IMG/VR virus record: IMGVR_UViG_3300018080_008436
Span: 186,001 to 250,000 of that record
Length of the DNA: 64,000 nt
Reading direction: 5' to 3' (one strand)
A model generated the notes under the pieces. That model made no database searches, was not told the origin of the DNA, and saw only the letters and a list, made by a program, of their open reading frames with translations. This document shows positions 1,879 through 53,428 of the stretch, in pieces (positions within the stretch are counted from its first letter, which is position 1; every line of letters starts with the position of its first letter). A program made the position numbers and the translations under genes.

Positions 1879-2467
1879 TTAATTGGTAAGCAGTCTCCGC
1901 AACTTCATCTGCCGTTTTGTCCGTTGTATCAATTACAACGCACTCTGTATCTCTCAATTCAAGATAAGCAGGTAAGTCCTCCCGATAAATCTTCATGAGT
2001 CTGCGAACTGTCTCTTGTTTTTTGGTCCAAGTACACTTCCCATGATCTGGGTTTTTTGCCCGTTCCCCCTCAACTCGTTCAAGTAAAATATTGTCCTCTC
2101 CATCAAGAAGAATAACAAGATCTATAACCTCATCATCATGAATTGTATGCTCCATGAACTCAACACTTATACCTTGTAACATACATTGATAAACGTAAGT
2201 AGAAGTCCACCATCTGTCGGCAACAACAACTTCGTCTTTGTTGGCTACGCATTCAATATATTCATCAAGTCTTGCGGCACTAAATAAAAGGAATTGGACT
2301 TTTTTATGAATCCCTTCCCATGGTTCAACGCCTCGGCATGCAGGTCTCAGAAGTTTGGCCAAATCTGTTCCATTAGGACTACTAAGAGTCTCATATCCTT
2401 TGGCCTTCAGATTTTTGATCAGTGTGGTTTTCCCTGCTCCATTTGGTCCCTCAACTACTACAAACAT
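1856..2467 (-). CDS. tmk: thymidylate (dTMP) kinase
   Basis: VVVEGPNGAGKTT P-loop; LLFSAARLD; VVADRW motif. Confidence 0.9.
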   Translation of the reverse strand: MFVVVEGPNGAGKTTLIKNLKAKGYETLSSPNGTDLAKLLRPACRGVEPWEGIHKKVQFLLFSAARLDEYIECVANKDEVVVADRWWTSTYVYQCMLQGISVEFMEHTIHDDEVIDLVILLDGEDNILLERVEGERAKNPDHGKCTWTKKQETVRRLMKIYREDLPAYLELRDTECVVIDTTDKTADEVAETAYQLIEERKNG

Positions 2468-2664: not shown

Positions 2665-3264
2665 TTATTTCCCAATAATTTCGTCAACAATCCCATACTC
2701 CAAGGCATCCTTGGCGCTCATGTAATTATCCCTTTCCATATCCTCTTCTATCGTCTTAACCTTCTGTCCCGTATGTCGGGCCATATGGCTGTTGAGGATC
2801 TTCTTCAAACGCTGAATCTCATTGGCATGGATCTGAATATCAGTCGCTTGCCCCCCATAACCTCCAGATGGTTGATGAATCATAATAGTGGCATTGGGCA
2901 AAGCATATCTTTTCCCTTTAGCTCCTGCGGACAACAGAAATGCACCCATTGATGCCGCTTGTCCTACAACAGTGGTTGCTATATCGCATTTTACCAGATT
3001 CATGGCATCGTATATTCCAAGACCAGCAGTAACGACTCCACCTGGAGAGTTAATGTAGATCTGTATATCATCTTTGTCACTTTCTGACTGAAGAAAAAGA
3101 AGTTGAGCGATTACCAAACTCGCCATCTCTTTATTCACTTCTCCACTCAACATGATAATACGATCTTTGAGAAGTCTGGAATAAATGTCATATGCTCTTT
3201 CACCATTTACAGACTTTTCAATAACAGTAGGAATAAGATAATTAGTTGGCTCCATATGACCCAC
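2665..3264 (-). CDS. clpP: ATP-dependent Clp protease proteolytic subunit
   Basis: [29 protein letters not shown] (catalytic Ser), MIHQPSGG (His), [18 protein letters not shown]. Confidence 0.97.
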
Positions 3265-4174: not shown

Positions 4175-4572
4175 TTACCCTCGTTAGCCTCAATATAATC
4201 TCTAATATACTCTATTGCTTCATCTAACGTAATCATAATTACGTCTGCCCTGTTTCTCAACCATGGAGAAGGATTTCCCGATGAATGAATGACAACTGTA
4301 TGTTTGTGCATCGCCCAGGCCATCTGCAAACCCATTGCCGTTCCCCATGAAGGTCTCTCAGCCAGAACCAAAACAATATCGCATGATGCGATACCAGCAG
4401 TGTCATAATCTACTAATGCTTGCTCTAGTTCAAACTCTCTTCCTCGACAATCAAAATCCATAGGATTGTGGAAAGTTGCGATATCTTCCAACTCTTGGAT
4501 TACTTTATCTCTCCAGTCGTTGCAGACACTGTCACTACATTTGTTGATTGCGCCTTCTAATGCAATTTTCAT
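4171..4572 (-). CDS. nucleoside 2-deoxyribosyltransferase-like protein
   Basis: D..I..CDIVLV...PSWGTAM pattern. The usual catalytic Glu (GT..E) is Gly here. Confidence 0.55.
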   Translation of the reverse strand: MKIALEGAINKCSDSVCNDWRDKVIQELEDIATFHNPMDFDCRGREFELEQALVDYDTAGIASCDIVLVLAERPSWGTAMGLQMAWAMHKHTVVIHSSGNPSPWLRNRADVIMITLDEAIEYIRDYIEANEGN

Positions 4573-4574
4573 TT

Positions 4575-5210
4575 CTATTCTCCCAATTCAAATACTAATG
4601 GTGGTTTTTTGTCTACATCGCTGATTGAGAACCCTGCCAACGATGCGTTGTAGAAAGTTGTGATCAAATCAAAATACTTTCCATATGAATAATGGACATG
4701 TCCAAATACATGTAACTTCGGTTTTACCCTCTCAACAGCTTTTAACAATGCTTTAGAGCCTATTGATTCTCCATACGCAGTCATGTCCAGAATACCCTTC
4801 GGAGGACCATGCGTAATCATTACGTCTACATTATCATAGATTCTATCGTAGACTTTTTCAACATCTTTTTCAGATTTTCCAAAAGCGCCGAAAAATGGAG
4901 GTGTCCAAGGTGAACCAAAAAACTTTACCCCCTCATATTCATAATGTTCATCGATTAGGATAACTGCATTGTGTAATCTTCTGAGATGCCCCATCTCAAT
5001 TGCTTTATCATGATTACCAGGAACGCAGATAATTTTCTTAAAGTCTTGTTTCTCAAACCACCTGTCAAGACTCTTAATTTGCTCTGCGGTTGTAGTTGGA
5101 GTACCACAAACAAGATCGCACATATCCCCTGAATGAATAAGGACATCACCCTTGGGCAGTGCGATCTTGTCATGATAACCATGAGTGTCGCTAATCGCAA
5201 CTATTCTCAC
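4575..5210 (-). CDS. calcineurin-like metallophosphoesterase
   Basis: ISDTHG, HSGD, VPGNHD, ITHGPP, VFGHVH motifs. Confidence 0.92.
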   Translation of the reverse strand: MRIVAISDTHGYHDKIALPKGDVLIHSGDMCDLVCGTPTTTAEQIKSLDRWFEKQDFKKIICVPGNHDKAIEMGHLRRLHNAVILIDEHYEYEGVKFFGSPWTPPFFGAFGKSEKDVEKVYDRIYDNVDVMITHGPPKGILDMTAYGESIGSKALLKAVERVKPKLHVFGHVHYSYGKYFDLITTFYNASLAGFSISDVDKKPPLVFELGE

Positions 5211-5639
5211 TTATACTCCCAGAAGAGCCTTGTACTTCTCGATCTCCATTGAAGTCTTGCCTTCGCTACTGATGAGCGAATCGAGTTTCTTCTGAGTTGC
5301 GTCAAGGCTTTTCTTGTCTTCGTTCCACTGGATGAAATCAATTCTTGCCTGGAAATCTTCTTCCCAGTCTTCCAGTGTATAACCATACCATTTGAAATCA
5401 ATACTGACTCCAAGTCTACGACAGGCTTCTTCGTACTTGTCCTTTCTGGTAAGAAGGTAAGCCAAAGCATTCACCAGCGTATCAATATTGGAAATAGTGT
5501 TAATATTGAAGAAGTTGTCATCGTCATACTTGAAAAGACCGTTGGTAACCAACGAGGATCTTTTCTTCTTTCCGAGCTTTGCTTTCTTCTCTTCAACGAC
5601 TTTGATCAGTTCTTCGATTTGTTTGTCATTAGCGTTCAT
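5211..5639 (-). CDS. hypothetical protein
   Basis: Likely start MNANDK at 5639 behind AAGGAG; the ORF-track start at 5726 overlaps the upstream gene. Confidence 0.65.
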   Translation of the reverse strand: MNANDKQIEELIKVVEEKKAKLGKKKRSSLVTNGLFKYDDDNFFNINTISNIDTLVNALAYLLTRKDKYEEACRRLGVSIDFKWYGYTLEDWEEDFQARIDFIQWNEDKKSLDATQKKLDSLISSEGKTSMEIEKYKALLGV

Positions 5640-6786: not shown

Positions 6787-6972
6787 TTCAGTACCTCTTG
6801 TTTGTAGTTTTTAGAAATTCAGTAAAGTACTATTATACATATTTTTCAACGTATTTTCCTACTATAATTCAAAAAAAAAATAAGAAAGCAAGTCGAAAGA
6901 CTAAAAAAGGGAGATCTTTTTTATCATATCTCCCTCTCAGAGTCATAAGTTGTTGAAAATTAATGACTTTTG

Positions 6973-7352
6973 TGGAGATGGCGAGAGTCGAACTCGCGTC
7001 CAGTATATCGATCCAAAAAGGTCTCTACATGCATAGTTGAGTGATTGTTTTTCAGGCTCATCCCAACAAGCCCTTAATCGTCTTACCGATTGTAGCAGTC
7101 TTTCCTATTGTCAGCGATCTTTCTCGTCGTAGCGTCCTATTCCACCAACGTGATCTTTTCTTCTGTCTGCTCAGTTAAAAACAGGCAACCCTGAGTAAGA
7201 CATCCGCTTGATTAAGCGGCTACTGCCGAAGCAGTAGGGAATTCAATTACTTTTTTAGCAATTATATTTTTGACCGATGATTAACGAGGCCAACGATCAT
7301 CCTCGACATGCAACCTAGATTTCATGACACCTGTCGATACCATTTCATCCCC
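6973..7352 (-). ncRNA. ssrA: tmRNA
   Basis: 5' GGGGATGAAATGGTATCGAC; 3' GCGAG-TTCGACT-CTCGC-CATCTCC-A; G3.U70 acceptor pair; tag frame 7259-7212 after ATAATT encodes AKKVIEFPTASAVAA-stop; CCA not encoded. Confidence 0.96.
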
Positions 7353-7414: not shown

Positions 7415-7600
7415 ATGAAAGCGAAAATTATATATCCTGTTTGCGAACCAGAGATTGAAGTTAAAGTCTCAATCACTAAACTAAATCCAGATGGTTCGAG
7501 TGAATCATCAGATACAATGTGGAAGGAAAGTGAGGAATACACCCTCAAAATATACAACAAGCCAATTATCGACGCAGTAGGCGAACAATGTTCAGAATAA
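7415..7600 (+). CDS. hypothetical protein
   Basis: 61-aa ORF, first of the plus-strand block. Confidence 0.55.
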   Translation: MKAKIIYPVCEPEIEVKVSITKLNPDGSSESSDTMWKESEEYTLKIYNKPIIDAVGEQCSE

Positions 7601-8061: not shown

Positions 8062-8523
8062 ATGGAAAACTATTGGACAGACACCACTCACTCTGTAAAA
8101 ATGGCAACCCCCAGACTTATCCAAGGATACGGTTACCTTTATATTTTTGATTGTGAGGCAGATGGAAGGAACTTCGTTCAAATGTCTCAGATCTTTGTTC
8201 CAAAAGAATTGAGATATGATCCTATTGGGATCTACAAACACTTCAAAAATTTAGACAGTCAATTCCCCATTTCTACGATAACTTCACTGCATAGAGGTCA
8301 AGGTCGGGATGAAAAGTGGGCTATTGAAAAAGCTAAAGACTTTGCAAAAAAGCAAGAAGAGAACCGAATGAAGGCTGAGAAAAGAGTTGAAGATAAAGAG
8401 AAAGAAAGGGGCGAACCTGCAAGCGAAGAGTTCAAAGAAGAATTCTTTGAGATGATGAAGAAGAAACACCCACCAAAAGAAGCAAGTAGTTGGTATAATA
8501 AGTATAAAGAATCTAGGAAATAG
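8062..8523 (+). CDS. hypothetical protein
   Basis: 153-aa ORF with AGGGA upstream. Confidence 0.7.
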   Translation: MENYWTDTTHSVKMATPRLIQGYGYLYIFDCEADGRNFVQMSQIFVPKELRYDPIGIYKHFKNLDSQFPISTITSLHRGQGRDEKWAIEKAKDFAKKQEENRMKAEKRVEDKEKERGEPASEEFKEEFFEMMKKKHPPKEASSWYNKYKESRK

Positions 8524-8952: not shown

Positions 8953-9252
8953 TTGGAAATGAAATTAGTAAAGTCATTTAGTGGGAAAACAAAAATAAAA
9001 ATGTCCCAAAAAGAATGGGTAGAGATGGGCAAAAGGGCTGGTTGGCTAAAAGAATCCGCCTACCCAAGTTTTCCAGGATATGATAATTGGAAAACTCTTC
9101 CAGACGATTATTATGGTGAAGAGCCAGAAGAGAAACCAGATCCAAGATGTCCTAAGTGTGACAAAGAAATGTATGGAGATGGTATGGGAGAATGGAGATG
9201 TGACGACAAAGAATGCGATGGTATAGTACATATCGATCCGCATGGGGAATAA
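8953..9252 (+). CDS. hypothetical protein with C-terminal Zn-ribbon
   Basis: MSQKEWVEMGKRAGWL motif; CPKC...C....C; AAGGAG SD. Confidence 0.7.
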   Translation: MEMKLVKSFSGKTKIKMSQKEWVEMGKRAGWLKESAYPSFPGYDNWKTLPDDYYGEEPEEKPDPRCPKCDKEMYGDGMGEWRCDDKECDGIVHIDPHGE

Positions 9253-9307
9253 GTTTACTTTCCATTTCGACTGAACGGAGAAAATTGAGAATTTTCTTTA
9301 TTCCAAC

Positions 9308-9335
9308 TTGAAAAGCCCAAAAGACAGCTTATAAT
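9308..9335 (+). promoter_or_regulatory. promoter of the Gln/Asn tRNA operon
   Basis: TTGAAA-AGCCCAAAAGACAGCT-TATAAT, near-identical to the promoters at 38088-38115 and 53401-53428. Confidence 0.85.
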
Positions 9336-9375
9336 GGTAGCAACGATCAATTAAGATCAATAAGGAATTAATAAA

Positions 9376-9450
9376 ATGTCAGTACAAGTTCAGCAGAATA
9401 ATCAAAATAACCAAGCCCTTGAGGGTTTTGGGAGGTTGTTCTCTGCTTGA
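9376..9450 (+). CDS. putative attenuator leader peptide MSVQVQQNNQNNQALEGFGRLFSA
   Basis: TAAGGA SD; 9 of codons 4-13 are Gln/Asn; followed by a terminator and then Gln/Asn tRNAs. Confidence 0.88.
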   Translation: MSVQVQQNNQNNQALEGFGRLFSA

Positions 9451-9467
9451 ACATAATCCGATTTACC

Positions 9468-9500
9468 AAAGCCCTCAGGTTTCGACCTGGGGGCTTTTTT
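9468..9500 (+). terminator. attenuator terminator A
   Basis: AAAGCCCTCAGG-TTTCGA-CCTGGGGGCTTTTTT. Confidence 0.9.
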
Positions 9501-9502
9501 AT

Positions 9503-9579
9503 TGTCCGATAGCATAACTGGCTAATGCAACTGGTTCTGATCCAGTAGATTCTAGGTTCAAATCCTAGTCGGACAACCA
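9503..9579 (+). tRNA. tRNA-Gln(CTG)
   Basis: TGTCCGA/TCGGACA acceptor; ACTGG-TTCTGAT-CCAGT; encoded CCA. Confidence 0.93.
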
Positions 9580-9581
9580 AT

Positions 9582-9655
9582 GGCTCTGTAGCTCAGTGGC
9601 GAGCATTTGGCTGTTAACCAAAAGGAAGCGAGTTCGATTCTCGTCGGGGCCTCCA
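9582..9655 (+). tRNA. tRNA-Asn(GTT), short D-loop
   Basis: TTTGG-CTGTTAA-CCAAA; T arm GCGAG-TTCGATT-CTCGT; CCA. The 6-nt D loop and U73 are atypical. Confidence 0.8.
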
Positions 9656-9677
9656 GAAGTTCTTTGATAATTTATGT

Positions 9678-9768
9678 TGGTAGGTGACCCGAATGGTAAG
9701 GGCCTCGGCTGTTAACCGAGTATGGGCAGGGATGTCCTTTGCGAGTTCAAGTCTCGCCCTACCAGCCA
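9678..9768 (+). tRNA. tRNA-Asn(GTT) with long variable arm (type II)
   Basis: CTCGG-CTGTTAA-CCGAG, then V-arm GGGCA-GGGA-TGTCC; G73; CCA. Confidence 0.88.
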
Positions 9769-9771
9769 AAC

Positions 9772-9896
9772 TGTGGCGTAGCTTAATGGTTAAAGCTCTA
9801 AAAGAAAGGAGTCTGATAATAAGACTCGTTACTGCAATAATTATTCTAAATTCGTCTATTAAACGAGAGATCTTGGTTCGAATCCAAGCGCCACAG
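9772..9896 (+). tRNA. tRNA-Asn(ATT) with a 53-nt insert (9800-9852) in the anticodon stem
   Basis: TGTGGCG/CGCCACA acceptor. Removing 9800-9852 gives a perfect CTCGT-CTATTAA-ACGAG arm and a 72-nt cloverleaf. No encoded CCA. Confidence 0.7.
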
Positions 9897-9904
9897 CTAA
9901 TGAT

Positions 9905-9981
9905 TGCCTCGTAGCATAATTGGTATTGCACCAGATTTTGATTCTGGGAATTTCTGGGTTCGAGTCCCAGCGAGGCATCCA
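9905..9981 (+). tRNA. tRNA-Gln(TTG)
   Basis: TGCCTCG/CGAGGCA; CCAGA-TTTTGAT-TCTGG; CCA. Confidence 0.92.
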
Positions 9982-10032
9982 TTTTTTACCACAAATCGTT
10001 CTATTGGTAACATTAATTTGTATAATAAAACT

Positions 10033-10776
10033 ATGTTCCCAAAAGTGGAGTCGGTTGTGAAAGAAAGGGAAAAAAGAAGTTTACTTTGGCACAAATATAA
10101 TGATGAAGAATTTAGAGAACTAGTAAAAAAGTCTCAAACATATTCTGACATACTTAGAGATCATGGCATGTCAAACAAAGGGGGGAATTGCAACACGCTA
10201 AAAAAGAGAATTGCTAAACTTGGGGTTAATGACGATCATATTGCAAAGGGGCATTCTTCTAATAAAGGTAAAAAGTTCATCTCTAAAAAGATTCCACTTA
10301 ATAAGATACTTGTAGAAAATTCTACCTACAATAGGGGGCATCTAAAAAATAGAATTATAGAAGAGAAACTAATAGATTACAAATGTCAAAAATGCGGAAT
10401 AACAAATAAATGGGAAGGCAGTGAACTTGTTTTAGTACTTGATCACATAAATGGTGTCAGTAATGATCATCGACTAAAAAACCTTCGTTTTCTATGCCCC
10501 AACTGCAACAGCCAGACAAAAACTTTTGCTGGAAGAAGTAAACGCAAAAGATATTACTGTGAACAATGCGGAAAAGAAAAATCGTATAAGCATTCTAAAA
10601 AATGCAAAAGTTGTGCCGCAAAAGATCTAGAAAAACGTAAAGTCCAAAACCGCCCTTCCAAAGAAGAACTTGCCGAAATGATTGATACAATGTCTTGGCT
10701 GGCAATCGGAAAAAAATATGGAGTTTCTGATAATGCAATCAGAAAATGGGCAAGATCTTACGGTATAATATCCTAA
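10033..10776 (+). CDS. HNH homing endonuclease with C-terminal HTH
   Basis: CQKC...LDHINGVSNDHRLKNLRFLCPNCNSQT. Start is ATG 10033 or GTG 10057 (GGAG upstream), not 9904, which lies at the tRNA. Confidence 0.9.
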   Translation: MFPKVESVVKEREKRSLLWHKYNDEEFRELVKKSQTYSDILRDHGMSNKGGNCNTLKKRIAKLGVNDDHIAKGHSSNKGKKFISKKIPLNKILVENSTYNRGHLKNRIIEEKLIDYKCQKCGITNKWEGSELVLVLDHINGVSNDHRLKNLRFLCPNCNSQTKTFAGRSKRKRYYCEQCGKEKSYKHSKKCKSCAAKDLEKRKVQNRPSKEELAEMIDTMSWLAIGKKYGVSDNAIRKWARSYGIIS

Positions 10777-10794
10777 CCTTAATGGAGAAGAGCA

Positions 10795-11028
10795 ATGAAA
10801 TTCCGCATCAAATACAAAAAAGGATTGGGCTTTTACGCTCAAGTCAAAAGATCATTCTGGGAAAACTGGATGAAAATTGGCAAACACACTGTTGGTTTTG
10901 GTCACTACCGCGAGGATTGCCTAAGCCATCCAATGGAAACCATTGAAGAAGCCAAGAAACGTGTTGAAAAGTACAAGGAGTGGGTAAGACTAACCAATCA
11001 AAAAGCAGAATATTACGAACTTCCATAA
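10795..11028 (+). CDS. hypothetical protein
   Basis: 77 aa with GGAG upstream. Confidence 0.6.
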   Translation: MKFRIKYKKGLGFYAQVKRSFWENWMKIGKHTVGFGHYREDCLSHPMETIEEAKKRVEKYKEWVRLTNQKAEYYELP

Positions 11029-11076
11029 TGGACAACAGACCGAAAGTCATAAAAGAAGCTGTTGACAAGATAACTG

Positions 11077-11116
11077 AATCAGAAGGTTGCGAGTTCGATC
11101 CTCGCTGGGACATCCA
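11077..11116 (+). pseudogene. 3' half of a tRNA (T arm, 3' acceptor strand, CCA)
   Basis: AATCAGAAGGTT-GCGAG-TTCGATC-CTCGC-TGGGACA-T-CCA; no 5' TGTCCCA strand upstream. Confidence 0.7.
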
Positions 11117-11138
11117 AATTTTGTATAATAGGAATAAT

Positions 11139-11212
11139 TACCCTATAGTGTAATGGTAGCACAAAAGTTTTTGGCACTTTTGGTCGGGGTTCAAATCCCT
11201 GTAGGGTAGCCA
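11139..11212 (+). tRNA. tRNA-Gln(TTG)
   Basis: TACCCTA/TAGGGTA; AAAGT-TTTTGGC-ACTTT; U1-A72, G73; CCA. Confidence 0.9.
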
Positions 11213-11263
11213 ACTATCTCCCCTCCTGTATAATATCTCTAAACCTTATAGGAGAAACCATTC

Positions 11264-11437
11264 ATGTCTAAAGAATTCGCCATCAATTCAAAAGAAATTA
11301 ACGAGAATAAGAGATATTCACTTTTAGCTTATGTCATAAACGAAAGATTACGTTTAGAAGGGATTAGCACAAACATTAACATACGTGAAACTGCTGATAA
11401 AATCATAGTTGACGTAAACAAGAAAGATACCACTTAA
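11264..11437 (+). CDS. small hypothetical protein (57 aa)
   Basis: AGGAGA SD, MSKEFAINSKEINE...; below the ORF-track cutoff. Confidence 0.55.
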   Translation: MSKEFAINSKEINENKRYSLLAYVINERLRLEGISTNINIRETADKIIVDVNKKDTT

Positions 11438-11679
11438 CACTTGGCTTTCATAAAAACATAGCAAATACTTGAGAGTAATGAAGTGAACGATCTAGAAAGA
11501 CATAAACAAAGACTAGCCCAAATCCATTCAGATAGCAAAAAGATAAGAGAAGATGTGGAAAACACTCTGAACATATTCAAAATATTATGGTGTCTCTTCA
11601 AAGCTTGGAGATTAAAATCAGAAGTAATTTATATAATCAAAGAGCTTGAAAAATCCTCATAACTTGCTATACTACCTGT

Positions 11680-11844
11680 ATGGCTAAAAAGAAGAAAAAG
11701 AAATACAAGAACTTCCTGGAATTCCTTGAAACCCGTCTGAATAGCGAGAATTTTAAGAAAAACGCTAGTGAAGAAGAATACCAGAAGACTCTTGAAAAAT
11801 ACAAGAAAGAGAAACTCATCCAACGATTCGGGAACAAAAAATGA
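11680..11844 (+). CDS. small basic hypothetical protein (54 aa)
   Basis: MAKKKKKKYKNFLEFLE...; ATGA overlap with the next ORF; promoter TTGAAA-16-TATACT at 11646-11673. Confidence 0.55.
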   Translation: MAKKKKKKYKNFLEFLETRLNSENFKKNASEEEYQKTLEKYKKEKLIQRFGNKK

Positions 11845-12200
11845 AACCATTTGAAGAAGTCTTTAAGATGTATCACGACATGGCAGGAGAGTGGAGAATG
11901 AATCTCGACAATCTGGCTTCTCTTCATCCTGACAGTCATATTGTTTTCGGAGCCGAAGAACCTGAATATGTATCAAAAGACTCTGTTATTGAAATGGATG
12001 TTTATCTCGCTGGAGAGAAAATCGGAGTCACAAGAGCCTGCGGAGAATTAGACAATGATGTCATTCGCAGAAATATGATTGGAATGAAAAGAGTCGGAGT
12101 AAAAAATGAGAGTGGTCATCACAATGCTTACTCCACAGGATTTGAGTTAACAGTTGATAAGGATAATAAAAGGATAGATTTAACTCCAAAAAAGTTTTAG
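11841..12200 (+). CDS. hypothetical protein
   Basis: 119-aa ORF whose stop overlaps the first base of tRNA-Cys. Confidence 0.65.
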   Translation: MKPFEEVFKMYHDMAGEWRMNLDNLASLHPDSHIVFGAEEPEYVSKDSVIEMDVYLAGEKIGVTRACGELDNDVIRRNMIGMKRVGVKNESGHHNAYSTGFELTVDKDNKRIDLTPKKF

Positions 12201-12319
12201 GTCGCGTAGTGTAATGGCAAGCATCTTATAAAATGAACCTGACATAAGGTTCTCTTCAGCAATAGTTAAAATCGTCTGCAAAACGAAGGGTCTGGGTTCG
12301 AATCCCAGCGCGACCTCCA
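12200..12319 (+). tRNA. tRNA-Cys(GCA) with a 45-nt insert (12228-12272) in the anticodon stem
   Basis: GGTCGCG/CGCGACC, U73, CCA. Removing 12228-12272 gives a perfect TTCGT-CTGCAAA-ACGAA arm. Confidence 0.8.
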
Positions 12320-12339
12320 ATTTAACATGTCAATTTAGT

Positions 12340-12367
12340 TTGACAAATTCAAAGCTGATGCTATATT
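12340..12367 (+). promoter_or_regulatory. sigma70-type promoter of rtcB
   Basis: TTGACA-16 nt-TATATT. Confidence 0.7.
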
Positions 12368-12411
12368 TATAGTATCGGCTTTTTTATGCAACAAAAAAAA
12401 CAGGTAGAAAG

Positions 12412-13680
12412 ATGATAATTTTGAAAGGCAAATACAACGAAGCGAAGATTTTCACAGATAACGTTGAATCTTCTGCTCAGGGCCAGATCATTACCTTCTT
12501 AAATGACAAAACATTTGAGAACGGAAATATCAGGATCATGCCAGATGTTCATGCAGGTGCAGGAGCCGTTATCGGGTTTACCGCTCCAGTTGGAGATAGG
12601 ATCATTCCAAACGTCATTGGAGTTGATATTGGCTGTGGAGTCTGCGCGTTCAAACTTGGACACAGAAAAGACATTGGTGAGAAGTTTGACAAACTCGACA
12701 AATTCATTGAAAAAACCATTCCTCATGGAATGAACGTTAATGGGGACTACAGAGATCTAGCCAAAAGCGGATATTGTGGAACCAAGGATGAGTTTGACGC
12801 ATTTACCGCAGAAGTAAAAGAAGTCTGCAATAGAACTGAACAGAACTTTACCAGAGTTATGTGCTCTTTGGGTTCTTTAGGTGGTGGAAACCATTTCATT
12901 GAAATTGACAAAGATGACGAAGGTAACCTCTGGTTAGTTGTTCATTCTGGTTCCAGGAATTTCGGTTTACAGATCGCCAAGTATCACCAGAACAAAGCAA
13001 AAGAATACTTGGACTTCATGAAATCGTCTGAGAACGCTAAGTTAGTGGCAGAAGTCAAAAAGACTGCGAACAAAAAAGAGATATCTGGGAAGATCAAAAA
13101 AGCCAAAGATGAGGCTAAAGAGAAGTATGGTGTACATACTGGTCTTGAGTATCTTGAAGGTGGAGGTGCTGACCAATATAAAAAGGATATGGACGTAGCT
13201 CAAAGGTTCGCAAGTTTTAACCGATTGGTTATGGTTGGTCGAATCGTTGAAGGTTTTTATGGACTGAAGTATTCAGAGATGGAAGTTTATCACTCAATCC
13301 ATAACTATATCAACTTCGAAGATGGAATCGTTCGAAAAGGAGCAATCTCTGCTCATTGTGGTGAGAAAGTTGTCATTCCTTTAAATATGGCTGATGGAAC
13401 AATCATTGGCATCGGAAAAGGAAATGAGGACTGGAATAACAGTGCGCCTCATGGAGCAGGACGTAAAATGTCCCGTTCAAAAGCCAAGAAGTCTTTGGAT
13501 GTGGATTATTTCAGGAAAAGAATGAAACAAGCTGGAGTCTGGTCTAGTTGTGTTGGAAAAAGTACATTGGATGAAGCACCAATGGCTTACAAAAAGGCCC
13601 AAGAGATTATTGACTATTTGGAGCCAACTGTTGAGATCCAATGTCACATGAAACCAGTTTATAACTTCAAGGCGCATTAA
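12412..13680 (+). CDS. rtcB: RtcB-family RNA 2',3'-cyclic/3'-phosphate ligase
   Basis: MPDVHAG, GVDIGCG, GSLGGGNHFIE, VHSGSRNFG, HNY, RKGA, SAPHGAGR, DEAPMAYK. Confidence 0.97.
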   Translation: MIILKGKYNEAKIFTDNVESSAQGQIITFLNDKTFENGNIRIMPDVHAGAGAVIGFTAPVGDRIIPNVIGVDIGCGVCAFKLGHRKDIGEKFDKLDKFIEKTIPHGMNVNGDYRDLAKSGYCGTKDEFDAFTAEVKEVCNRTEQNFTRVMCSLGSLGGGNHFIEIDKDDEGNLWLVVHSGSRNFGLQIAKYHQNKAKEYLDFMKSSENAKLVAEVKKTANKKEISGKIKKAKDEAKEKYGVHTGLEYLEGGGADQYKKDMDVAQRFASFNRLVMVGRIVEGFYGLKYSEMEVYHSIHNYINFEDGIVRKGAISAHCGEKVVIPLNMADGTIIGIGKGNEDWNNSAPHGAGRKMSRSKAKKSLDVDYFRKRMKQAGVWSSCVGKSTLDEAPMAYKKAQEIIDYLEPTVEIQCHMKPVYNFKAH

Positions 13681-15353: not shown

Positions 15354-16334
15354 ATGAAGAGAATTATTTTTTTTTGTTTGGCGGTAATTTGTGTAACAGT
15401 ATTTGCGAAAGATGAGAACAAATACAGATCGATCTCTTTGTATGAAGAGAATGACATTGTTGCAGGCACTGACCTTGACTATACAAATGGTTTCAGGTTA
15501 CAGTACATCAGTAGTGATATTGAGACCTGGGACTTGCCAGACTGGGCCATCAAAATTGGCAAGAATCTTCCGTTATTCAATCATGAAGGTTACAAAAACA
15601 ATATTGGGATCGGATTTGGTCAGGATATGTACACTCCTACCGATATTGAAGATTTCAATTTAAGAGAAGATGACAGGCCATACGCAGGATGGCTGTATTT
15701 AGCCTTTAGTCTACATCATAAAGACGAAAATGATTTACATAAGTTGGAGTTGACGTTGGGAGTTGTTGGTCCTTACTCATTAGCTTGTGATACCCAAAAA
15801 ACAATTCATGAGTGGATTGATTCAAGAAACCCAAATGGTTGGGATCATCAGTTGGGTAATGAGTTCGGCTTGAACCTATCTTATGAATTCCGCAAGAAGT
15901 ATCTTTTCTTAGATAATTGGGTTGATGTTATCCCTAGTGCTAAGGTTAGTATTGGTAACGTTTCAACATATTTAGCAACTGGAACTACTGTTCGTTGTGG
16001 ATATAACTTGCCGAATGATTTTCATAGCAACAGGATTAGTTCTTCTGGGTTTGCTTTGCCAACCAATTACAGCAACAAAGGGGATTGGAGTGTTTATATT
16101 TTTGGCAATGTAACTGGATATGCAGTTGCTAGAGACATCTTCTTGGATGGAAATACCTTTGAGGACAGTCATAGCGTCGATAAGAAGCATTTTAAGGCCG
16201 AATTCGAGCTAGGAGTCGGGATGAGCTACAAACGCTTTTTTATGACCTATACAAGGGTTTATAAGACGAAAGAGTATGATACTCAGGAAAAGAATCATAC
16301 TTATGGATCTGTAAACCTTGGATTCAGGTTCTAA
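15354..16334 (+). CDS. lpxR: LpxR-family (lipid A deacylase-like) outer-membrane beta-barrel
   Basis: Signal peptide; ENDIVAGTDLDYTNG, GQDMYTP, DRPYAGWLY, GWDHQL, RDIFLDGNTF; C-terminal Phe. Confidence 0.85.
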   Translation: MKRIIFFCLAVICVTVFAKDENKYRSISLYEENDIVAGTDLDYTNGFRLQYISSDIETWDLPDWAIKIGKNLPLFNHEGYKNNIGIGFGQDMYTPTDIEDFNLREDDRPYAGWLYLAFSLHHKDENDLHKLELTLGVVGPYSLACDTQKTIHEWIDSRNPNGWDHQLGNEFGLNLSYEFRKKYLFLDNWVDVIPSAKVSIGNVSTYLATGTTVRCGYNLPNDFHSNRISSSGFALPTNYSNKGDWSVYIFGNVTGYAVARDIFLDGNTFEDSHSVDKKHFKAEFELGVGMSYKRFFMTYTRVYKTKEYDTQEKNHTYGSVNLGFRF

Positions 16335-36349: not shown

Positions 36350-36437
36350 TGGTGGAGCCGACAGGATTCGAACCTGCGCGGAGCTTGCGCTCTCTTGATT
36401 AAAAGTCAAGTACCTTCAGCCACTCGGTTACGACTCC
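36350..36437 (-). tRNA. tRNA-Lys(TTT) with long variable arm (type II)
   Basis: CTTGA-CTTTTAA-TCAAG; V-arm GAGC-GCAA-GCTC; type II-like D arm; A73; CCA. Confidence 0.9.
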
Positions 36438-36439
36438 AA

Positions 36440-37315
36440 TTAAATTATTCCATAACTTCTCGCCCATTTACGAATTGTATTACATGTTACCCCATATTTT
36501 TTACCAATAGCAACCCAAGTCATCTTATCTATCATGTCTTTTAGCTCTTCTTTAGATGGGCGATTCTGAACCTTACGACGACTTGGCAACTTACCATTAC
36601 ATGAAGTACATCTGGTGCTTCTATGCTCAATTGCTTTGTTGCAATCTACACATCTATTTGTTTTTTCTTCCTCTAGCTTTTTAACATATTCCTCTATGGT
36701 TGTTTCAATTTTACAGTTTGCACATTTGTCCTTAATGACATTTTTGATCTGGGCAACAACCATTTTTCTATGCTTTTTGTCAAGCTTATTGTATTTAGAC
36801 CACCTGATTCTATATACGAACCATCCATTGTCTTCCAAATATTTATTTCTACGCTTATCACTTTTTATTATTTTTTCATCGCAATAATGTTGCTCTCCAT
36901 CGATTTCTATGTCTATTTTTCTTATTGGATCAGAGAAATCGAGTTGATATGTGCCAACTCTGTGATGGTATATTAACTCTATATTCTCATTTCTAAATAA
37001 CTTCTCAAAATATTTTTCTGGGTACGACATTCCTTTGCTATGATGGTTAAGTAAATACGGGACTTTATCTGGATTTTCTTTAAGAAACTTTCTTCTTGCC
37101 TTACTAATCTTTTCTTTTGTTTTCTCTGACAGTTTTCTGGGTTTTAGTTTACAACTTAATTTCATGGCACTCGATCTTTCTCTTGATACAAAATCTCCTC
37201 GTTTTCTGGCAGACGTAATTGCCGCCATACTAACTCCAAATTCCTCAATAACTTCTCTCCATGTATGTCCTTCGTCATAAAACTTCTGAATTTCAATCCA
37301 ATTGTATCTAGGCAT
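36440..37315 (-). CDS. Vsr/DUF559-like endonuclease (putative homing endonuclease) with C-terminal HTH
   Basis: YQLDFS...IDIEIDGEQHY...DKRRNKYLEDNGWFVYRIRW; C-terminus nearly identical to that of the HNH ORF. Confidence 0.88.
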   Translation of the reverse strand: MPRYNWIEIQKFYDEGHTWREVIEEFGVSMAAITSARKRGDFVSRERSSAMKLSCKLKPRKLSEKTKEKISKARRKFLKENPDKVPYLLNHHSKGMSYPEKYFEKLFRNENIELIYHHRVGTYQLDFSDPIRKIDIEIDGEQHYCDEKIIKSDKRRNKYLEDNGWFVYRIRWSKYNKLDKKHRKMVVAQIKNVIKDKCANCKIETTIEEYVKKLEEEKTNRCVDCNKAIEHRSTRCTSCNGKLPSRRKVQNRPSKEELKDMIDKMTWVAIGKKYGVTCNTIRKWARSYGII

Positions 37316-37404
37316 AACAACACTCCTTTTTAGTTGTATTGTTATGTATTTCTAGATAAGTATAGCAACATCCTTTGAGAAATTGGACTTTTATGGTTCA
37401 AATT

Positions 37405-37481
37405 TGGTGGGCTGGGTGGGACTTGAACCCACGACCAACGGAGTAAGAATCCGCGACTCTATCCAACTGAGTTACCAACCC
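37405..37481 (-). tRNA. tRNA-Lys(CTT)
   Basis: GCGGA-TTCTTAC-TCCGT; CCA. Confidence 0.92.
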
Positions 37482-37486
37482 ATTTT

Positions 37487-37561
37487 TGGTGGACCTGGAG
37501 AATTTTGAAATCTCGACCAACGGATTAAAAGTCCGCGACTCTGCCTCTGAGTTACAGGTCC
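37487..37561 (-). tRNA. tRNA-Lys(TTT)
   Basis: GCGGA-CTTTTAA-TCCGT; CCA. Confidence 0.9.
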
Positions 37562-37616
37562 AAAGTGAGAGAGCATATCTACTTCGAAGACTTAACAATA
37601 TGCTTTTAAACTCTCT

Positions 37617-37692
37617 TGGAGCCGCCTGACGGAATTGAACCGACATCCTCTGAGTACAAAACAGAGATAATAATCCTTTATACTAAGGCGGC
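37617..37692 (-). tRNA. tRNA-Thr(TGT)
   Basis: GCCGCCT/AGGCGGC; loop TTTGTAC with a U31-U39 mismatch; CCA. Confidence 0.85.
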
Positions 37693-37698
37693 GTCATA

Positions 37699-37770
37699 AG
37701 CCCTTGCCCAGCAACGATCTGGGACTAATCCCTTACGAGGGGATAGTTCTGCCAATTAAACTACAAGGGC
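37699..37770 (-). tRNA. tRNA-Thr(CGT)
   Basis: ATCCC-CTCGTAA-GGGAT; atypical T loop ATCGTTG; no encoded CCA. Confidence 0.8.
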
Positions 37771-37798
37771 ATCTTACTTAAATTTTCAAAGATCATTC

Positions 37799-37873
37799 TG
37801 GAGCATCCAATCGGACTCGAACCGATAACCCCCTCCTTACCATGGAGGAATTCTACCATTGAACTATGGATGC
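37799..37873 (-). tRNA. tRNA-Thr(GGT)
   Basis: CCTCC-ATGGTAA-GGAGG; CCA. Confidence 0.9.
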
Positions 37874-37881
37874 ATAGGCAC

Positions 37882-37915
37882 AAAAAAACCCGAAGTCTTT
37901 ATCGGACTTCGGGTT
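37882..37915 (-). terminator. attenuator terminator B
   Basis: AACCCGAAGTC-CGATAAA-GACTTCGGGTT-TTTTT. Confidence 0.9.
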
Positions 37916-37937
37916 GGTCAGTATCTTTACGTTCAGG

Positions 37938-38015
37938 TCAAGACAACAAACCTCCCGAAGCCACGCGTTTCTTCGTGGTTTTGGTTGTTTTAGTTGTCTT
38001 GGTTGTAGCGTACAT
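37938..38015 (-). CDS. putative attenuator leader peptide MYATTKTTKTTKTTKKRVASGGLLS
   Basis: TAAGGA SD; codons 4-16 are all Thr (8) or Lys (5); precedes the terminator and the Thr/Lys tRNAs. Confidence 0.9.
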   Translation of the reverse strand: MYATTKTTKTTKTTKKRVASGGLLS

Positions 38016-38087
38016 TTTTAAAATTCCTTATCTTCATTTAATTGAAGTTTATGAGCATTGTTCATTAAACTCGCTCAAGTTACCCCT

Positions 38088-38115
38088 ATTATAAGCTATG
38101 TTTGGAGCTTTTCAA
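38088..38115 (-). promoter_or_regulatory. promoter of the Thr/Lys tRNA operon
   Basis: TTGAAA-AGCTCCAAACATAGCT-TATAAT. Confidence 0.85.
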
Positions 38116-51944: not shown

Positions 51945-52026
51945 TGGTATGGGGGGTGGGACTTGAACCCACAGAAATTCACTTGTTTATAAGACAAGCC
52001 GCTTAACCAAATTTGCGTACCCCCAC
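51945..52026 (-). tRNA. tRNA-Ile(TAT)
   Basis: CTTGT-CTTATAA-ACAAG; 9-nt variable region; A73; CCA. Confidence 0.85.
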
Positions 52027-52042
52027 ACAGGTAAGAAGTTTT

Positions 52043-52149
52043 GGGGAGGTGGGGAGGCTCACTGGGGTAAGTGGCTTCTTATTATATTGCCGTCCATTGT
52101 GTCAGCCCGTTCTCCTTCTAACGGGTGTTTCCGATGACATGGCATCCCC
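52043..52149 (-). ncRNA. unidentified structured RNA between tRNA-Val and tRNA-Ile
   Basis: Closing GGGGA/TCCCC helix; nested CCAT-TGTCA..TGACA-ATGG and CCCGTT/AACGGG stems; second hairpin GAAGCCACT/AGTGAGCCTC. GC-rich within an AT-rich context. Confidence 0.5.
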
Positions 52150-52151
52150 TT

Positions 52152-52228
52152 TGGTGGGCAGTACAGGACTCGAACCTGTCACGACCTCGGTGTAAACGAG
52201 GCATTCTAGCCAAATGAATTAACTGCCC
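52152..52228 (-). tRNA. tRNA-Val(TAC)
   Basis: CCTCG-TTTACAC-CGAGG; CCA. Confidence 0.93.
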
Positions 52229-52259
52229 AGTAAAATCATATTCGAAATACTTCTTTCAT

Positions 52260-52287
52260 ATTATAACCTAAATTTCCTTTAGTTCAA
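52260..52287 (-). promoter_or_regulatory. internal promoter upstream of tRNA-Val/ncRNA/tRNA-Ile
   Basis: TTGAAC-16 nt-TATAAT. Confidence 0.65.
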
Positions 52288-52292
52288 CAAAC

Positions 52293-52373
52293 AAGCTGAT
52301 TTATTTTTTGAAGGGTTTGAACCTTCTAGATGGTGTAAGCATCGTTAACCTGTTTTTTGCTGTAATCAGCCTT
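52293..52373 (-). ncRNA. small RNA with end-pairing stem, ACAGCAA motif and a T-arm
   Basis: AGGCTGATT/AATCAGCTT stem; internal GAAGG-TTCAAAC-CCTTC. Confidence 0.55.
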
Positions 52374-52379
52374 TATTTT

Positions 52380-52456
52380 TGGTGGACCTACACGGATTCG
52401 AACCGAGATTTCCTCCCTGCCAGAGAGGTGTGTTAGCCATTAGTCACTATAAGCCC
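52380..52456 (-). tRNA. tRNA-Ala(GGC)
   Basis: CCTCT-CTGGCAG-GGAGG; G3.U70; CCA. Confidence 0.88.
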
Positions 52457-52490
52457 TTTTTGTTTCATAACTCGTTGATAATTAACGACT

Positions 52491-52569
52491 TGGTGGAGAC
52501 GGTCGGAATCGAACCGACCACATGCTGGTTGCAAACCAGTATCGCCAAAGCCTTGGTACATGCGCCCCC
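52491..52569 (-). tRNA. tRNA-Ala(TGC), atypical D arm
   Basis: CTGG-TTTGCAA-CCAG; G3.U70; CCA. Confidence 0.82.
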
Positions 52570-52574
52570 AAGTT

Positions 52575-52820
52575 TTAAACGCCTAATTCGTTATCCTCAA
52601 AAAACACAACATCCGAAATCGGTTCTAGTCTTTCGTATGTCTCATTCCATATTTCAATTTCTTCATCCGTCAATGCAACCTTGTCATTTTTACAGTTCCA
52701 TCGATCTTTGTCTGGACACCAACAACTGCCTTCTGCATGTATCCATTGTGCCATGCATTTCTCAAACATTTTCTTGTAATCTACGTTGTCTTCCATCGTC
52801 TGTCTCCAGTATCTGGTCAT
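52575..52820 (-). CDS. hypothetical protein within the tRNA cluster
   Basis: 81 aa; may start at MEDNVDY. Confidence 0.5.
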   Translation of the reverse strand: MTRYWRQTMEDNVDYKKMFEKCMAQWIHAEGSCWCPDKDRWNCKNDKVALTDEEIEIWNETYERLEPISDVVFFEDNELGV

Positions 52821-52861
52821 TTATACGGACATCATGGCCACATAAATGGCCACATAAGTCT

Positions 52862-52938
52862 TGGTGGAGCATAAGAGACTCGAACTCTTGACATCCTGCT
52901 TGCAAAGCAGGTGCTCTAGCCATCTGAGCTAATGCCCC
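52862..52938 (-). tRNA. tRNA-Ala(TGC)
   Basis: Canonical GGGGCATTAGCTCAG...CCTGC-TTTGCAA-GCAGG; G3.U70; CCA. Confidence 0.95.
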
Positions 52939-52999
52939 AAAATACGGGATACCTAAGCATTGCCCGTTTTTGAATGGATGTCGAAACATTGCCATTCTT

Positions 53000-53092
53000 T
53001 GGTGGAGAAGATTGGAGTCGAACCAATTAAAATTGTTTGCCGAAGAGAGCCTTATAACAAGCTCAGTTTGCCCTCCGCAGGGCATCTTCTCC
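53000..53092 (-). ncRNA. tRNA-like RNA lacking a canonical anticodon arm
   Basis: GGAGAAG/CTTCTCC acceptor, GCCCT-GCGG-AGGGC arm, ATTGG-TTCGACT-CCAAT T arm, ACCA; the centre is the hairpin+TCTTCGGCAA element. Confidence 0.65.
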
Positions 53093-53129
53093 AGTTGTTT
53101 TAGAACTCTGTTCGTTAAAACATCGTTCT

Positions 53130-53206
53130 TGGTAGTTGGGACAGGACTCGAACCTGCATCCTCCGATATGTAAAAACGGTGCTCCGCGCAATTAAGCTAC
53201 CCAACC
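53130..53206 (-). tRNA. tRNA-Val(TAC)
   Basis: Loop TTTACAT, one stem mismatch; CCA. Confidence 0.8.
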
Positions 53207-53232: not shown

Positions 53233-53263
53233 AAAAAAAGCCCTGTCATTTCTGACAGGGCTT
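53233..53263 (-). terminator. attenuator terminator C
   Basis: AAGCCCTGTCA-GAAA-TGACAGGGCTT-TTTTT. Confidence 0.92.
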
Positions 53264-53285
53264 AAACCGACTTCTGGAAACTACA

Positions 53286-53372
53286 TCATCCAGAAAGAGC
53301 AGAAAAGCCCTGCCCGTCTGCGACTACCGCGACGGCTACTACTGCTATGGCTATTTCTACTCTCTTTTTCAT
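53286..53372 (-). CDS. putative attenuator leader peptide MKKRVEIAIAVVAVAVVADGQGFSALSG
   Basis: GGAG SD 9 nt upstream; 13 of codons 5-18 are Val/Ala/Ile; both Ile codons are ATA. Confidence 0.88.
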   Translation of the reverse strand: MKKRVEIAIAVVAVAVVADGQGFSALSG

Positions 53373-53400
53373 AAAACATATCTCCAGTTACGTTGCCCCT

Positions 53401-53428
53401 ATTATAAGGCATCTATTTGGCTTTTCAA
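53401..53428 (-). promoter_or_regulatory. promoter of the Val/Ala/Ile tRNA operon
   Basis: TTGAAA-AGCCAAATAGATGCCT-TATAAT. Confidence 0.85.

Follow-up and report, generated by a model that had tools for sequence, protein, structure and literature searches.

The reason why bacteriophages carry tRNA genes is debated: such genes are thought to offset a mismatch in codon usage or the loss of host tRNAs, and the competing ideas are a match to codon usage, replacement of host tRNAs that decay, and escape from defences that cleave tRNA. How phage tRNA genes are regulated is largely unexplored. The window analysed here (the whole 64,000-nt stretch, taken from record IMGVR_UViG_3300018080_008436) contains at 9308-9500 a locus that raises this question in a specific form, for here a promoter is followed in turn by a short open reading frame (ORF) dense in Gln and Asn codons and by an intrinsic terminator, directly before genes for Gln and Asn tRNAs: does translation of the ORF decide whether the tRNA genes are transcribed? 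A sequence-only reading had proposed this, describing a Gln/Asn leader attenuator whose control codons match the tRNAs downstream. The tests possible in silico support the proposal. The ORF has translation signals and is enriched in the relevant codons, a terminator follows it, the pairing that would form an antiterminator is statistically significant, and a 1:2 hairpin is predicted; folding with a masked ribosome footprint, two paralogous elements in the window and analogous elements in unrelated phages add to this, but no experiment bears on it. It is judged likely (with a probability of roughly 0.8) that the locus, here termed attenuator A, controls tRNA genes by transcription attenuation of the trp/his type, mediated by the ribosome that translates a leader peptide. 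The phage is uncultured and the evidence for attenuation is entirely computational; there are no expression data, and translation, termination efficiency and trigger are all inferred.

All the anatomy of a leader-peptide attenuator that had been listed for 9308-9500 is present there (Table 1), with translation and the efficiency of termination inferred. The promoter is sigma-70-like, matches the consensus at 11 of 12 positions and has the joint top score within 9000-12400. The Shine-Dalgarno (SD) context ATAAGGAATT recurs in a second element (B) described below; the gene starting at 8959 uses the Shine-Dalgarno sequence AAGGAG. Nine of the ten codons in the control run of leader A specify Gln or Asn (CAA three times, CAG twice, AAT three times and AAC once). 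Directly after this run, and still inside the ORF, lies segment 2, a near copy of the 3' arm of the terminator. The terminator hairpin itself has a calculated energy of -19.8 kcal/mol, and the first tRNA gene begins only 2 nt beyond the end of its T-tract at 9500.

Table 1. Positions of the features of elements A, B and C in the window, and of leader ORFs found in the survey of other phages (L numbers; positions in the survey contigs). Assignments are computational; shuffle counts are the number of 2000 shuffles that reach the observed energy of antiterminator pairing.
Feature	Position	Strand	Remarks
Promoter A	9308-9335	+	-35 TTGAAA, 16-nt spacer, -10 TATAAT; inside the thrice-occurring 28-nt box
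Shine-Dalgarno A	9362-9366	+	AAGGA, 9 nt 5' of leader A ATG; read from the sequence
Leader ORF A	9376-9450	+	24 codons plus TGA
Control-codon run A	9385-9414	+	codons 4-13, peptide QVQQNNQNNQ
1:2 hairpin A	9388-9452	+	minimum-free-energy folds; putative anti-antiterminator or pause hairpin
Segment 2 of A	9417-9432	+	antiterminator 5' strand; leader codons 14-19
Segment 3 of A	9466-9479	+	terminator 5' arm; common to antiterminator and terminator
Intrinsic terminator A	9468-9497; T-tract 9495-9500	+	13-bp stem (7 G-C), 4-nt loop
tRNA array A	9503-9981	+	Gln(CUG), Asn(GUU), Asn(GUU), AUU-loop tRNA-like gene, Gln(UUG)
tRNA-Gln(CUG)	9503-9579	+	ARAGORN and Rfam
tRNA-Asn(GUU)	9582-9655	+	ARAGORN and Rfam
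Second tRNA-Asn(GUU)	9678-9768	+	long variable arm; ARAGORN and Rfam
Non-canonical tRNA-like gene, AUU loop	9772-9900	+	insertion of ~53 nt between D arm and anticodon arm
tRNA-Gln(UUG)	9905-9981	+	ARAGORN and Rfam
Putative attenuator B	37882-38115	-	Thr/Lys leader ahead of Thr and Lys tRNAs
Promoter B	38115-38088	-	28-nt box
Leader ORF B	38015-37938	-	25 codons; 13 consecutive Thr/Lys codons at 38006-37968
Segment 2 of B	37963-37953	-	from pairing analysis
Intrinsic terminator B	37915-37887; T-tract to 37882	-	
tRNA array B	36350-37873	-	Thr(GGU), Thr(CGU), Thr(UGU), Lys(UUU), Lys(CUU), endonuclease-like ORF, Lys(UUU)
Terminator closing the array B unit	36295-36273	-	
Putative attenuator C	53233-53428	-	Val/Ala/Ile leader ahead of Val, Ala and Ile tRNAs
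Promoter C	53428-53401	-	28-nt box
Leader ORF C	53372-53286	-	28 codons; 13/14 at 53360-53319 are Val, Ala or Ile
Segment 2 of C	53315-53304	-	from pairing analysis
Intrinsic terminator C	53263-53238 plus T-tract	-	
tRNA array C	51945-53206	-	Val(UAC), Ala(UGC), Ala(GGC), Val(UAC), Ile(UAU)
L298 leader	2163-2243	-	Ile/Lys/Arg/Met/Thr-rich; ahead of CAU, UUU and UCU tRNAs; 73/2000 shuffles
L362 leader	5157-5267	-	array homologous to that of L414
L382 leader	9764-9853	+	Leu/Ser/Thr/Cys/His; ahead of Ser, Thr, Cys, His and Leu tRNAs; 4/2000 shuffles
L397 leader	2943-3032	-	Phe/Ala/Glu/Asp; ahead of Phe, Glu, Asp and Ala tRNAs
L401 leader	8279-8359	+	run CLYWSLFS; ahead of Phe, Tyr, Ser, Trp, Cys and Leu tRNAs; 57/2000 shuffles
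L402 leader	4380-4445	-	Thr/Asn/Ser/Pro; ahead of Thr, Asn, Pro and Ser tRNAs; 5/2000 shuffles
L414 leader	7468-7575	-	array homologous to that of L362; 105/2000 shuffles
L429 leader	4980-5069	-	homologue of L397; Phe/Ala/Glu/Asp; ahead of Phe, Glu, Asp and Ala tRNAs

The control codons CAA, CAG, AAT and AAC had been matched to the anticodons TTG, CTG, ATT and GTT, respectively. Three of these, CTG, GTT and TTG, were confirmed by both ARAGORN and Rfam, and the claim for ATT held only in part, this anticodon being found solely in the insertion-bearing gene at 9772-9900. That gene receives no call from ARAGORN at default settings; when the insertion is removed in silico, the most frequent call is Asn(att) (148 calls). 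An Ile(aat) model returned by the intron mode of ARAGORN is implausible. The presence of an ATT anticodon in array A is accordingly a reasonable possibility that cannot yet be regarded as secure.

The promoter of attenuator A lies within a 28-nt box (CTTGAAAAGC, 11 nt, CTTATAAT) which has exactly three exact matches in the window, as against 0.15 expected. Every copy opens the same series of leader ORF, terminator and tRNA array, giving the sister elements B and C on the opposite strand. In each case the regulated genes are tRNA genes, as judged by ARAGORN and Rfam, and not genes for biosynthesis, transport or aminoacyl-tRNA synthetases. Elements A and B can be aligned over most of their length, the chief differences being the codon run and the two pairing segments; they are clear paralogues, and the pairing segments have therefore co-varied between them. 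The distance from the T-tract to the first tRNA gene is only 2, 8 and 26 nt in A, B and C, respectively, so that there is no promoter for an array in these gaps and polymerase can reach the tRNA genes only by reading through the terminator. In attenuator A there is no room for a promoter between the terminator and the first tRNA gene. It is probable, by inference from the sequence, that B and C act on their own arrays by the same logic as A. Clusters of tRNA genes in phages such as T4, T5, KVP40 and the jumbo phages are often interrupted by homing-endonuclease ORFs, and array B contains an endonuclease-like ORF before its final gene. Array C includes at least two further tRNA-like sequences that the tools did not call. 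It also has an internal promoter-like site (52287-52260) followed by a mini-ORF, which cannot serve as a leader, since its ATG directly adjoins the -10 box and would lie 5' of any transcript start.

To assess the correspondence between leader and array, 3321 small ORFs from the two strands of the window were scored. Leaders A, B and C each rank first for the amino acids of their own array, with binomial p values for the best window of 5.8e-9, 4.8e-11 and 6.2e-9, respectively; since leader A has the highest Gln+Asn score of all these ORFs, a chance origin of its composition is ruled out. The match extends to individual codons. Leader A contains every codon for Gln and for Asn, and in leader B the four Thr codons and the two Lys codons all occur, ahead of an array that holds all three Thr and both Lys isoacceptors (anticodons GGU, CGU, UGU, UUU and CUU). 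In leader C both Ile codons are ATA, and the sole Ile tRNA of array C has the anticodon UAU; GTT is absent from this leader, yet it accounts for 55% of the Val codons in the long ORFs of the phage. Thus each leader mirrors the tRNA content of its own array. It had been suggested that Gln and Asn are co-regulated since both are often made on the tRNA by GatCAB. This rationale is unsupported, and it is also unneeded, because the sister groupings Thr+Lys and Val+Ala+Ile, which cannot be explained by transamidation, follow the same rule.

In all three elements the near copy of the terminator 3' arm lies directly after the codon run, inside the ORF, and the leader can therefore pair with the 5' arm of its own terminator. 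The 14-bp pairing that had been claimed for A was confirmed (9418-9431 with 9466-9479). Its duplex energy of -23.7 kcal/mol was reached by none of 2000 dinucleotide shuffles of the leader ORF, for which the energy was -9.9 +/- 2.3 kcal/mol. The corresponding duplexes in B (-15.4 kcal/mol) and C (-18.5 kcal/mol) were matched in 3 and 1 of 2000 shuffles, respectively, and cross-element combinations of leader and terminator gave only background values (-7.1 to -12.1 kcal/mol), so that pairing is specific for the element's own terminator.

These results also bear on the possibility that the ORFs act through their products, either as micro-peptides or as minigenes that trap peptidyl-tRNA in the manner of the lambda bar minigenes, and not as attenuator leaders. 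In favour of this, leaders A, B and L402 (from an unrelated phage, see below) are alike in their C-terminal parts, with endings of the Gly-Gly/Arg-Leu type. However, the codons that these C-terminal parts have in common lie in the very stretch of RNA that can pair with the terminator, which explains the constraint at the level of RNA; the leaders have 21-36 codons, whereas bar minigenes have two or three; and a function of the peptide cannot explain why the run changes with the set of tRNAs downstream. We consider this alternative very unlikely.

If the locus is an attenuator, its fold should depend on the position of the ribosome. The 1:2 hairpin over the control codons that had been claimed is, together with the terminator, the minimum-free-energy fold of the untranslated leader A, and this hairpin is predicted to tie up segment 2 in the absence of a ribosome. 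A translating ribosome was simulated by masking a 29-nt footprint codon by codon, with the transcript cut at the terminator loop, the moment at which the decision is made. Under these conditions the antiterminator is obtained while the A site is at codons 1-11 of A, 1-16 of B and 1-15 of C, and is blocked once the ribosome has passed the run and covers segment 2; in A it is lost from codon 13. The masked folds thus gave the switch that had been expected, and the model predicts the classical logic of attenuation, in which stalling leads to read-through and fluent translation to termination. When the whole terminator is included, it is the equilibrium minimum for A and C even with a stalled ribosome, and the switch must therefore be kinetic, as it is in classical attenuators. 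The 1:2 hairpin at 9388-9452 is the minimum-free-energy fold before segment 3 has been made, and the later outcome depends on folding kinetics. Once segment 3 is out and no ribosome is present, the antiterminator exceeds the 1:2 hairpin formed earlier in stability, by 5.6 kcal/mol (A) or 2.8 kcal/mol (B), so the default state of an untranslated transcript is not clearly 'off'.

That the terminator wins at equilibrium means that something must hold it open, and this can be taken as a point for a different kind of switch, in which an antitermination protein of phage or host, or T-box-like binding of tRNA, decides on read-through and the ORFs are incidental. Protein antiterminators are often used by phages, and there are weak sub-threshold Rfam matches to a PyrR binding site (27 bits against a cut-off of 54) and to other structured leaders. 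Against this, no leader family reaches its gathering threshold, and a T-box (RF00230) is absent even among the 27 Rfam matches at E <= 10 for 9280-9510; at gathering thresholds, only tRNA and tmRNA match in the whole window. Attenuator families appear only below their cut-offs, with His_leader as the best leader-type match (His_leader, RF00514, 25.2 bits, E = 0.025, cut-off 49; Thr_leader, RF00506, 14.8 against 55; Phe_leader, RF01859, 16.7 against 55), and these matches reflect a generic 'hairpin plus terminator' resemblance. A factor-driven switch would moreover leave unexplained why three ORFs, each with an SD and an ATG, have codon runs that correspond to the tRNAs encoded after them, and gives no account of why segment 2 always lies directly 3' of the run, within the ORF. 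It is therefore regarded as very unlikely.

Ribosome-mediated attenuation accommodates these features, and for A the following sequence of events may be envisaged. Transcription would start about 7 nt past the end of the -10 box at 9335, and the 1:2 hairpin would fold first. A ribosome would then load at the SD/ATG and translate the 24-codon leader. With charged Gln and Asn tRNAs plentiful, it would clear the ten control codons and cover 9417-9432 during synthesis of segments 3 and 4, so that the terminator at 9468-9497 forms and the transcript stops 2 nt short of the first tRNA. Were decoding of CAA, CAG, AAT or AAC slow, a ribosome stalled at 9385-9414 would open the 1:2 hairpin and free segment 2 to capture the terminator 5' arm in the 14-bp antiterminator, and polymerase would enter the Gln/Asn tRNA array. 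Because the molecule sensed is also the product, this would amount to direct negative feedback on decoding capacity, with phage tRNAs made on demand and switched off again when decoding recovers. As candidate triggers one may infer a shortage of host tRNAs, brought about by defence nucleases that cleave them or by host shut-off, or a high codon demand late in infection. Extra tRNA is useless if the stall reflects amino-acid starvation, and any benefit requires that the tRNA and not the amino acid be limiting. In silico, the sequence parts have been shown to be present, the codon runs and the pairing to be significant, and the fold to depend on ribosome position.

The source phage (Ga0180433_10000003 in the same record) has a genome of ~476-525 kb and belongs to an orphan lineage; its LpxR gene is a hint that the host is Gram-negative. 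Its attenuator regions are identical across five assemblies, and no additional tRNA arrays were found in the ~8 kb past each end of the window. No attenuator DNA homologue was found by blastn of elements A, B and C against 50,697 deposited phages, and the protein adjoining element B has no homologue outside the phage itself. Neither the exact promoter pattern, sought in viral contigs and, in part, in metagenome contigs, nor two shorter motif patterns, nor the use of neighbouring proteins as anchors revealed diverged relatives; these searches yielded only the same phage, in its five near-identical assemblies, or matches to tRNA genes alone. Covariation in A, B and C can therefore be judged only by comparing the paralogues within the genome, and a structural survey was run because DNA homologues of this lineage are lacking.

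For this survey, phage contigs with a T-run before a tRNA D-arm were collected by two pattern scans, and the same pattern was applied to bacterial genomes; every gap of at least 150 nt 5' of a tRNA gene was then searched for small ORFs, which were scored by their enrichment in the amino acids of the tRNAs downstream. About 350 phage regions were covered, comprising 260 gaps from a first viral set and other loci and 85 from a second viral set. Among the 260 gaps, four gave p < 1e-6, against a mean of 0.135 with permuted amino-acid sets, and ten gave p < 1e-4, against a mean of 2.1; more cases came from the second set. Of 150 bacterial gaps, none gave p < 1e-5 and none had the ORF-terminator-tRNA layout. 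The scanner depends on ARAGORN and would therefore miss arrays that open with a non-canonical tRNA.

The order leader ORF, strong terminator, tRNA was found in at least six unrelated phage lineages (L298, L382, L397/L429, L401, L402 and L362/L414; Table 1), the terminators of L298 and L382 having been spotted by eye only. None of these contigs resembles the window by tblastx, and apart from L362, L414 and L417 they have no mutual blastn match at E <= 1e-20. When the leaders of L397, L362, L402, L401, L298 and L382 were compared with deposited phages by blastn, only the tRNA parts matched, or nothing at all. Sampled tRNA regions of KVP40, Serratia phage BF, the crAss-like phage cr127_1, Lak-A1 and the 735-kb LR756501 contain no such leaders. 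Support for antiterminator pairing varies among the lineages (Table 1), and in L362, L397 and L429 the pairing is not individually significant in 2000 shuffles. Between the homologues L397 and L429 the control codons show synonymous changes, the terminator stems differ yet remain paired, and the antiterminator shows a compensatory exchange (AGGTCA:TGACCT in one, TGGTCA:TGACCA in the other).

The survey also bears on the simplest alternative, that the terminators are merely leaky or act as insulators, the tRNAs being made by basal read-through and the ORFs being untranslated by-products of composition or duplication. The lack of expression data leaves room for this, as does the fact that the terminator is the thermodynamic ground state. 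It is countered by the enrichment of cognate codons in all three arrays of the window (p from 1e-9 to 1e-11), by an enrichment across phages that exceeds that for permuted amino-acid sets, by the significant and element-specific complementarity of segment 2 to the terminator arm, and by the preservation of the peptide through the synonymous substitutions between L397 and L429; furthermore, a strong promoter placed straight before a constitutive terminator would have no obvious purpose. This alternative too is considered very unlikely.

Attenuation by a leader peptide is familiar from the enterobacterial trp, his, leu, thr, ilvGMEDA/ilvBN and pheA operons, which have the same promoter-proximal short ORF with its run of regulatory codons, the same alternative 1:2, 2:3 and 3:4 hairpins, and an intrinsic terminator directly before the regulated genes; leaders that respond to several amino acids are likewise known from thr (Thr+Ile) and ilv (Ile+Val+Leu). 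The enterobacterial attenuators differ in that they regulate enzymes, whereas the phage element would regulate tRNAs, with no metabolic step in the loop. In the trp leader the stop codon lies between segments 1 and 2, while in the phage leader it lies between segments 2 and 3; in the masked folds a ribosome at this codon of the phage leader leaves segment 2 free again, which is a point against the model. Closest in spirit is the pheM leader of Escherichia coli pheST, where a component of the translation machinery is attenuated according to the supply of its cognate charged tRNA, but there the output is a synthetase and not a tRNA, a single amino acid is involved, and the system is chromosomal. 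T-box riboswitches share with the phage element the competition between terminator and antiterminator, the sensing of the state of a specific tRNA, and the control of translation-related genes; they differ in binding uncharged tRNA directly, without translation, by means of a specifier codon and a conserved T-box sequence, in place of which the phage element has an SD, an ATG and a codon run. A search of the literature, which reached few subscription journals and so is no proof of novelty, found no case in which tRNA genes, whether of phages or not, are controlled by a leader peptide or by attenuation. What is new is, in all likelihood, the use of a known attenuation mechanism with the sensed tRNAs as its output, apparently recurrent in phages.

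If this is correct, the element is a self-contained homeostat for translation capacity, whose sensor and output are one molecule, and attenuation by leader peptides extends beyond amino-acid metabolism. At ~200 nt the elements are small, and they are modular, A and B differing mainly in the run and the co-varied stem, and they should therefore be easy to test and to re-target. Leader sequences may also reveal which tRNAs a phage expects to be short; for uncultured phages this would be a new pointer, obtained by computation, to host defence or to codon conflict. It is tempting to go further and to see here the first recognised members of a widespread, phage-specific class of 'tRNA-demand sensors', by which arrays would stay silent until ribosomes stall on particular codons, whereupon exactly the missing tRNAs would be made. 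In the strongest form of this idea the elements would be an inducible counter to host defences that deplete tRNAs, directed against anticodon nucleases whose targets include the tRNAs for Lys, Thr, Asn and Gln, and would work alongside an RtcB ligase and a tmRNA encoded nearby. The balance of our judgement falls against this bolder reading, which is nevertheless possible. The same window does encode a tmRNA (6972-7352) and an RtcB RNA ligase (12412-13680), which fits a general theme of translation maintenance.

The tRNA-like genes of this region and of several other phages include a set interrupted by an insertion of some 45-55 nt that separates the D arm from the anticodon arm. The form of the insertion is conserved, in that a 6-bp hairpin is followed by a motif resembling ACNGCAAYA, and once it is removed the anticodon loops read AUU (Asn) and GCA (Cys). 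Unrelated jumbo phages, some of them in culture, also have such genes, annotated there as pseudo-tRNAs. It is tempting to suggest that the insertion represents a hitherto unrecognised class of small tRNA intron. An RtcB RNA ligase gene adjoins an insertion-bearing gene in the window, and together with a phage-encoded tmRNA it flanks the Gln/Asn tRNA genes of array A.

Coordinates of features in the window and in other phages
Feature	Position	Strand	Source or evidence
tRNA-like gene with insertion	9772-9900	+	window
tRNA-like gene with insertion	12200-12316	+	window
tRNA-like gene with insertion	5009-5133		Serratia phage BF (L562)
tRNA-like gene with insertion	first tRNA		phage contig L298
tRNA-like gene with insertion			735-kb phage LR756501 (L032)
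Octamer GGGAGGTT, Shine-Dalgarno-like	9430-9437	+	leader A
Octamer GGGAGGTT, Shine-Dalgarno-like	37957-37950	-	leader B
Isolated tRNA 3' fragment (T arm, acceptor strand, CCA)	11083-11116	+	window
tRNA-like sequence in array C	~53090-53000	-	read from sequence
tRNA-like sequence in array C	~52568-52488	-	read from sequence
Promoter-like site TTGAAC-16-TATAAT	52287-52260	-	10/12 matches
HNH endonuclease ORF	10033-10776	+	window
DUF559/restriction-endonuclease-like ORF with HTH domains	36440-37315	-	window
LpxR homologue, full-length (outer-membrane lipid A deacylase)	15354-16334	+	Pfam PF09982, E = 4e-102
tmRNA, phage-encoded	6972-7352	-	Rfam 143.5 bits; tag end ...AVAA
RtcB RNA ligase	12412-13680	+	phrog_1075, E = 9e-131

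Array A also contains a tRNA-Asn(GUU) gene (9678-9768, +) of 91 nt with a long variable arm, a feature that in bacteria is normally confined to the tRNAs for Leu, Ser and Tyr. In phage arrays on two IMG/VR contigs, L414 and L417, ARAGORN called tRNA-Asn genes of canonical form whose anticodon is ATT; an A34 Asn tRNA therefore recurs in phages and is not specific to the window. The isolated 3' fragment, which is similar to Asn tRNA and lies just 5' of a solitary tRNA-Gln(UUG) at 11139, is likely to be the remnant of a duplication.

The short leader ORFs A and B, which belong to putative attenuators upstream of tRNA arrays, have an octamer in common, at or just 3' of segment 2, the stretch able to pair with the terminator 5' arm; the unrelated leader of phage contig L402 has GGGAGGCTT at the equivalent position. 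The octamer might simply belong to the segment that mimics the terminator; alternatively, it might serve as an internal ribosome pause site.

Neither of the two additional tRNA-like sequences in the Val/Ala/Ile array C was called by ARAGORN or Rfam; in the second, a G3:U70 pair and an Ala-like UGC anticodon loop are combined with an aberrant D arm. The promoter-like site within this array lies upstream of the second tRNA-Val and of tRNA-Ile(UAU), so it is conceivable that the distal part of the array is also expressed independently of the attenuator.

Both endonuclease-type ORFs adjoin or interrupt tRNA arrays, and placement beside or within such arrays is typical of homing endonucleases. The presence of an LpxR gene, from which the host is inferred, suggests a Gram-negative bacterium, whose lipid A might be remodelled by the phage homologue.
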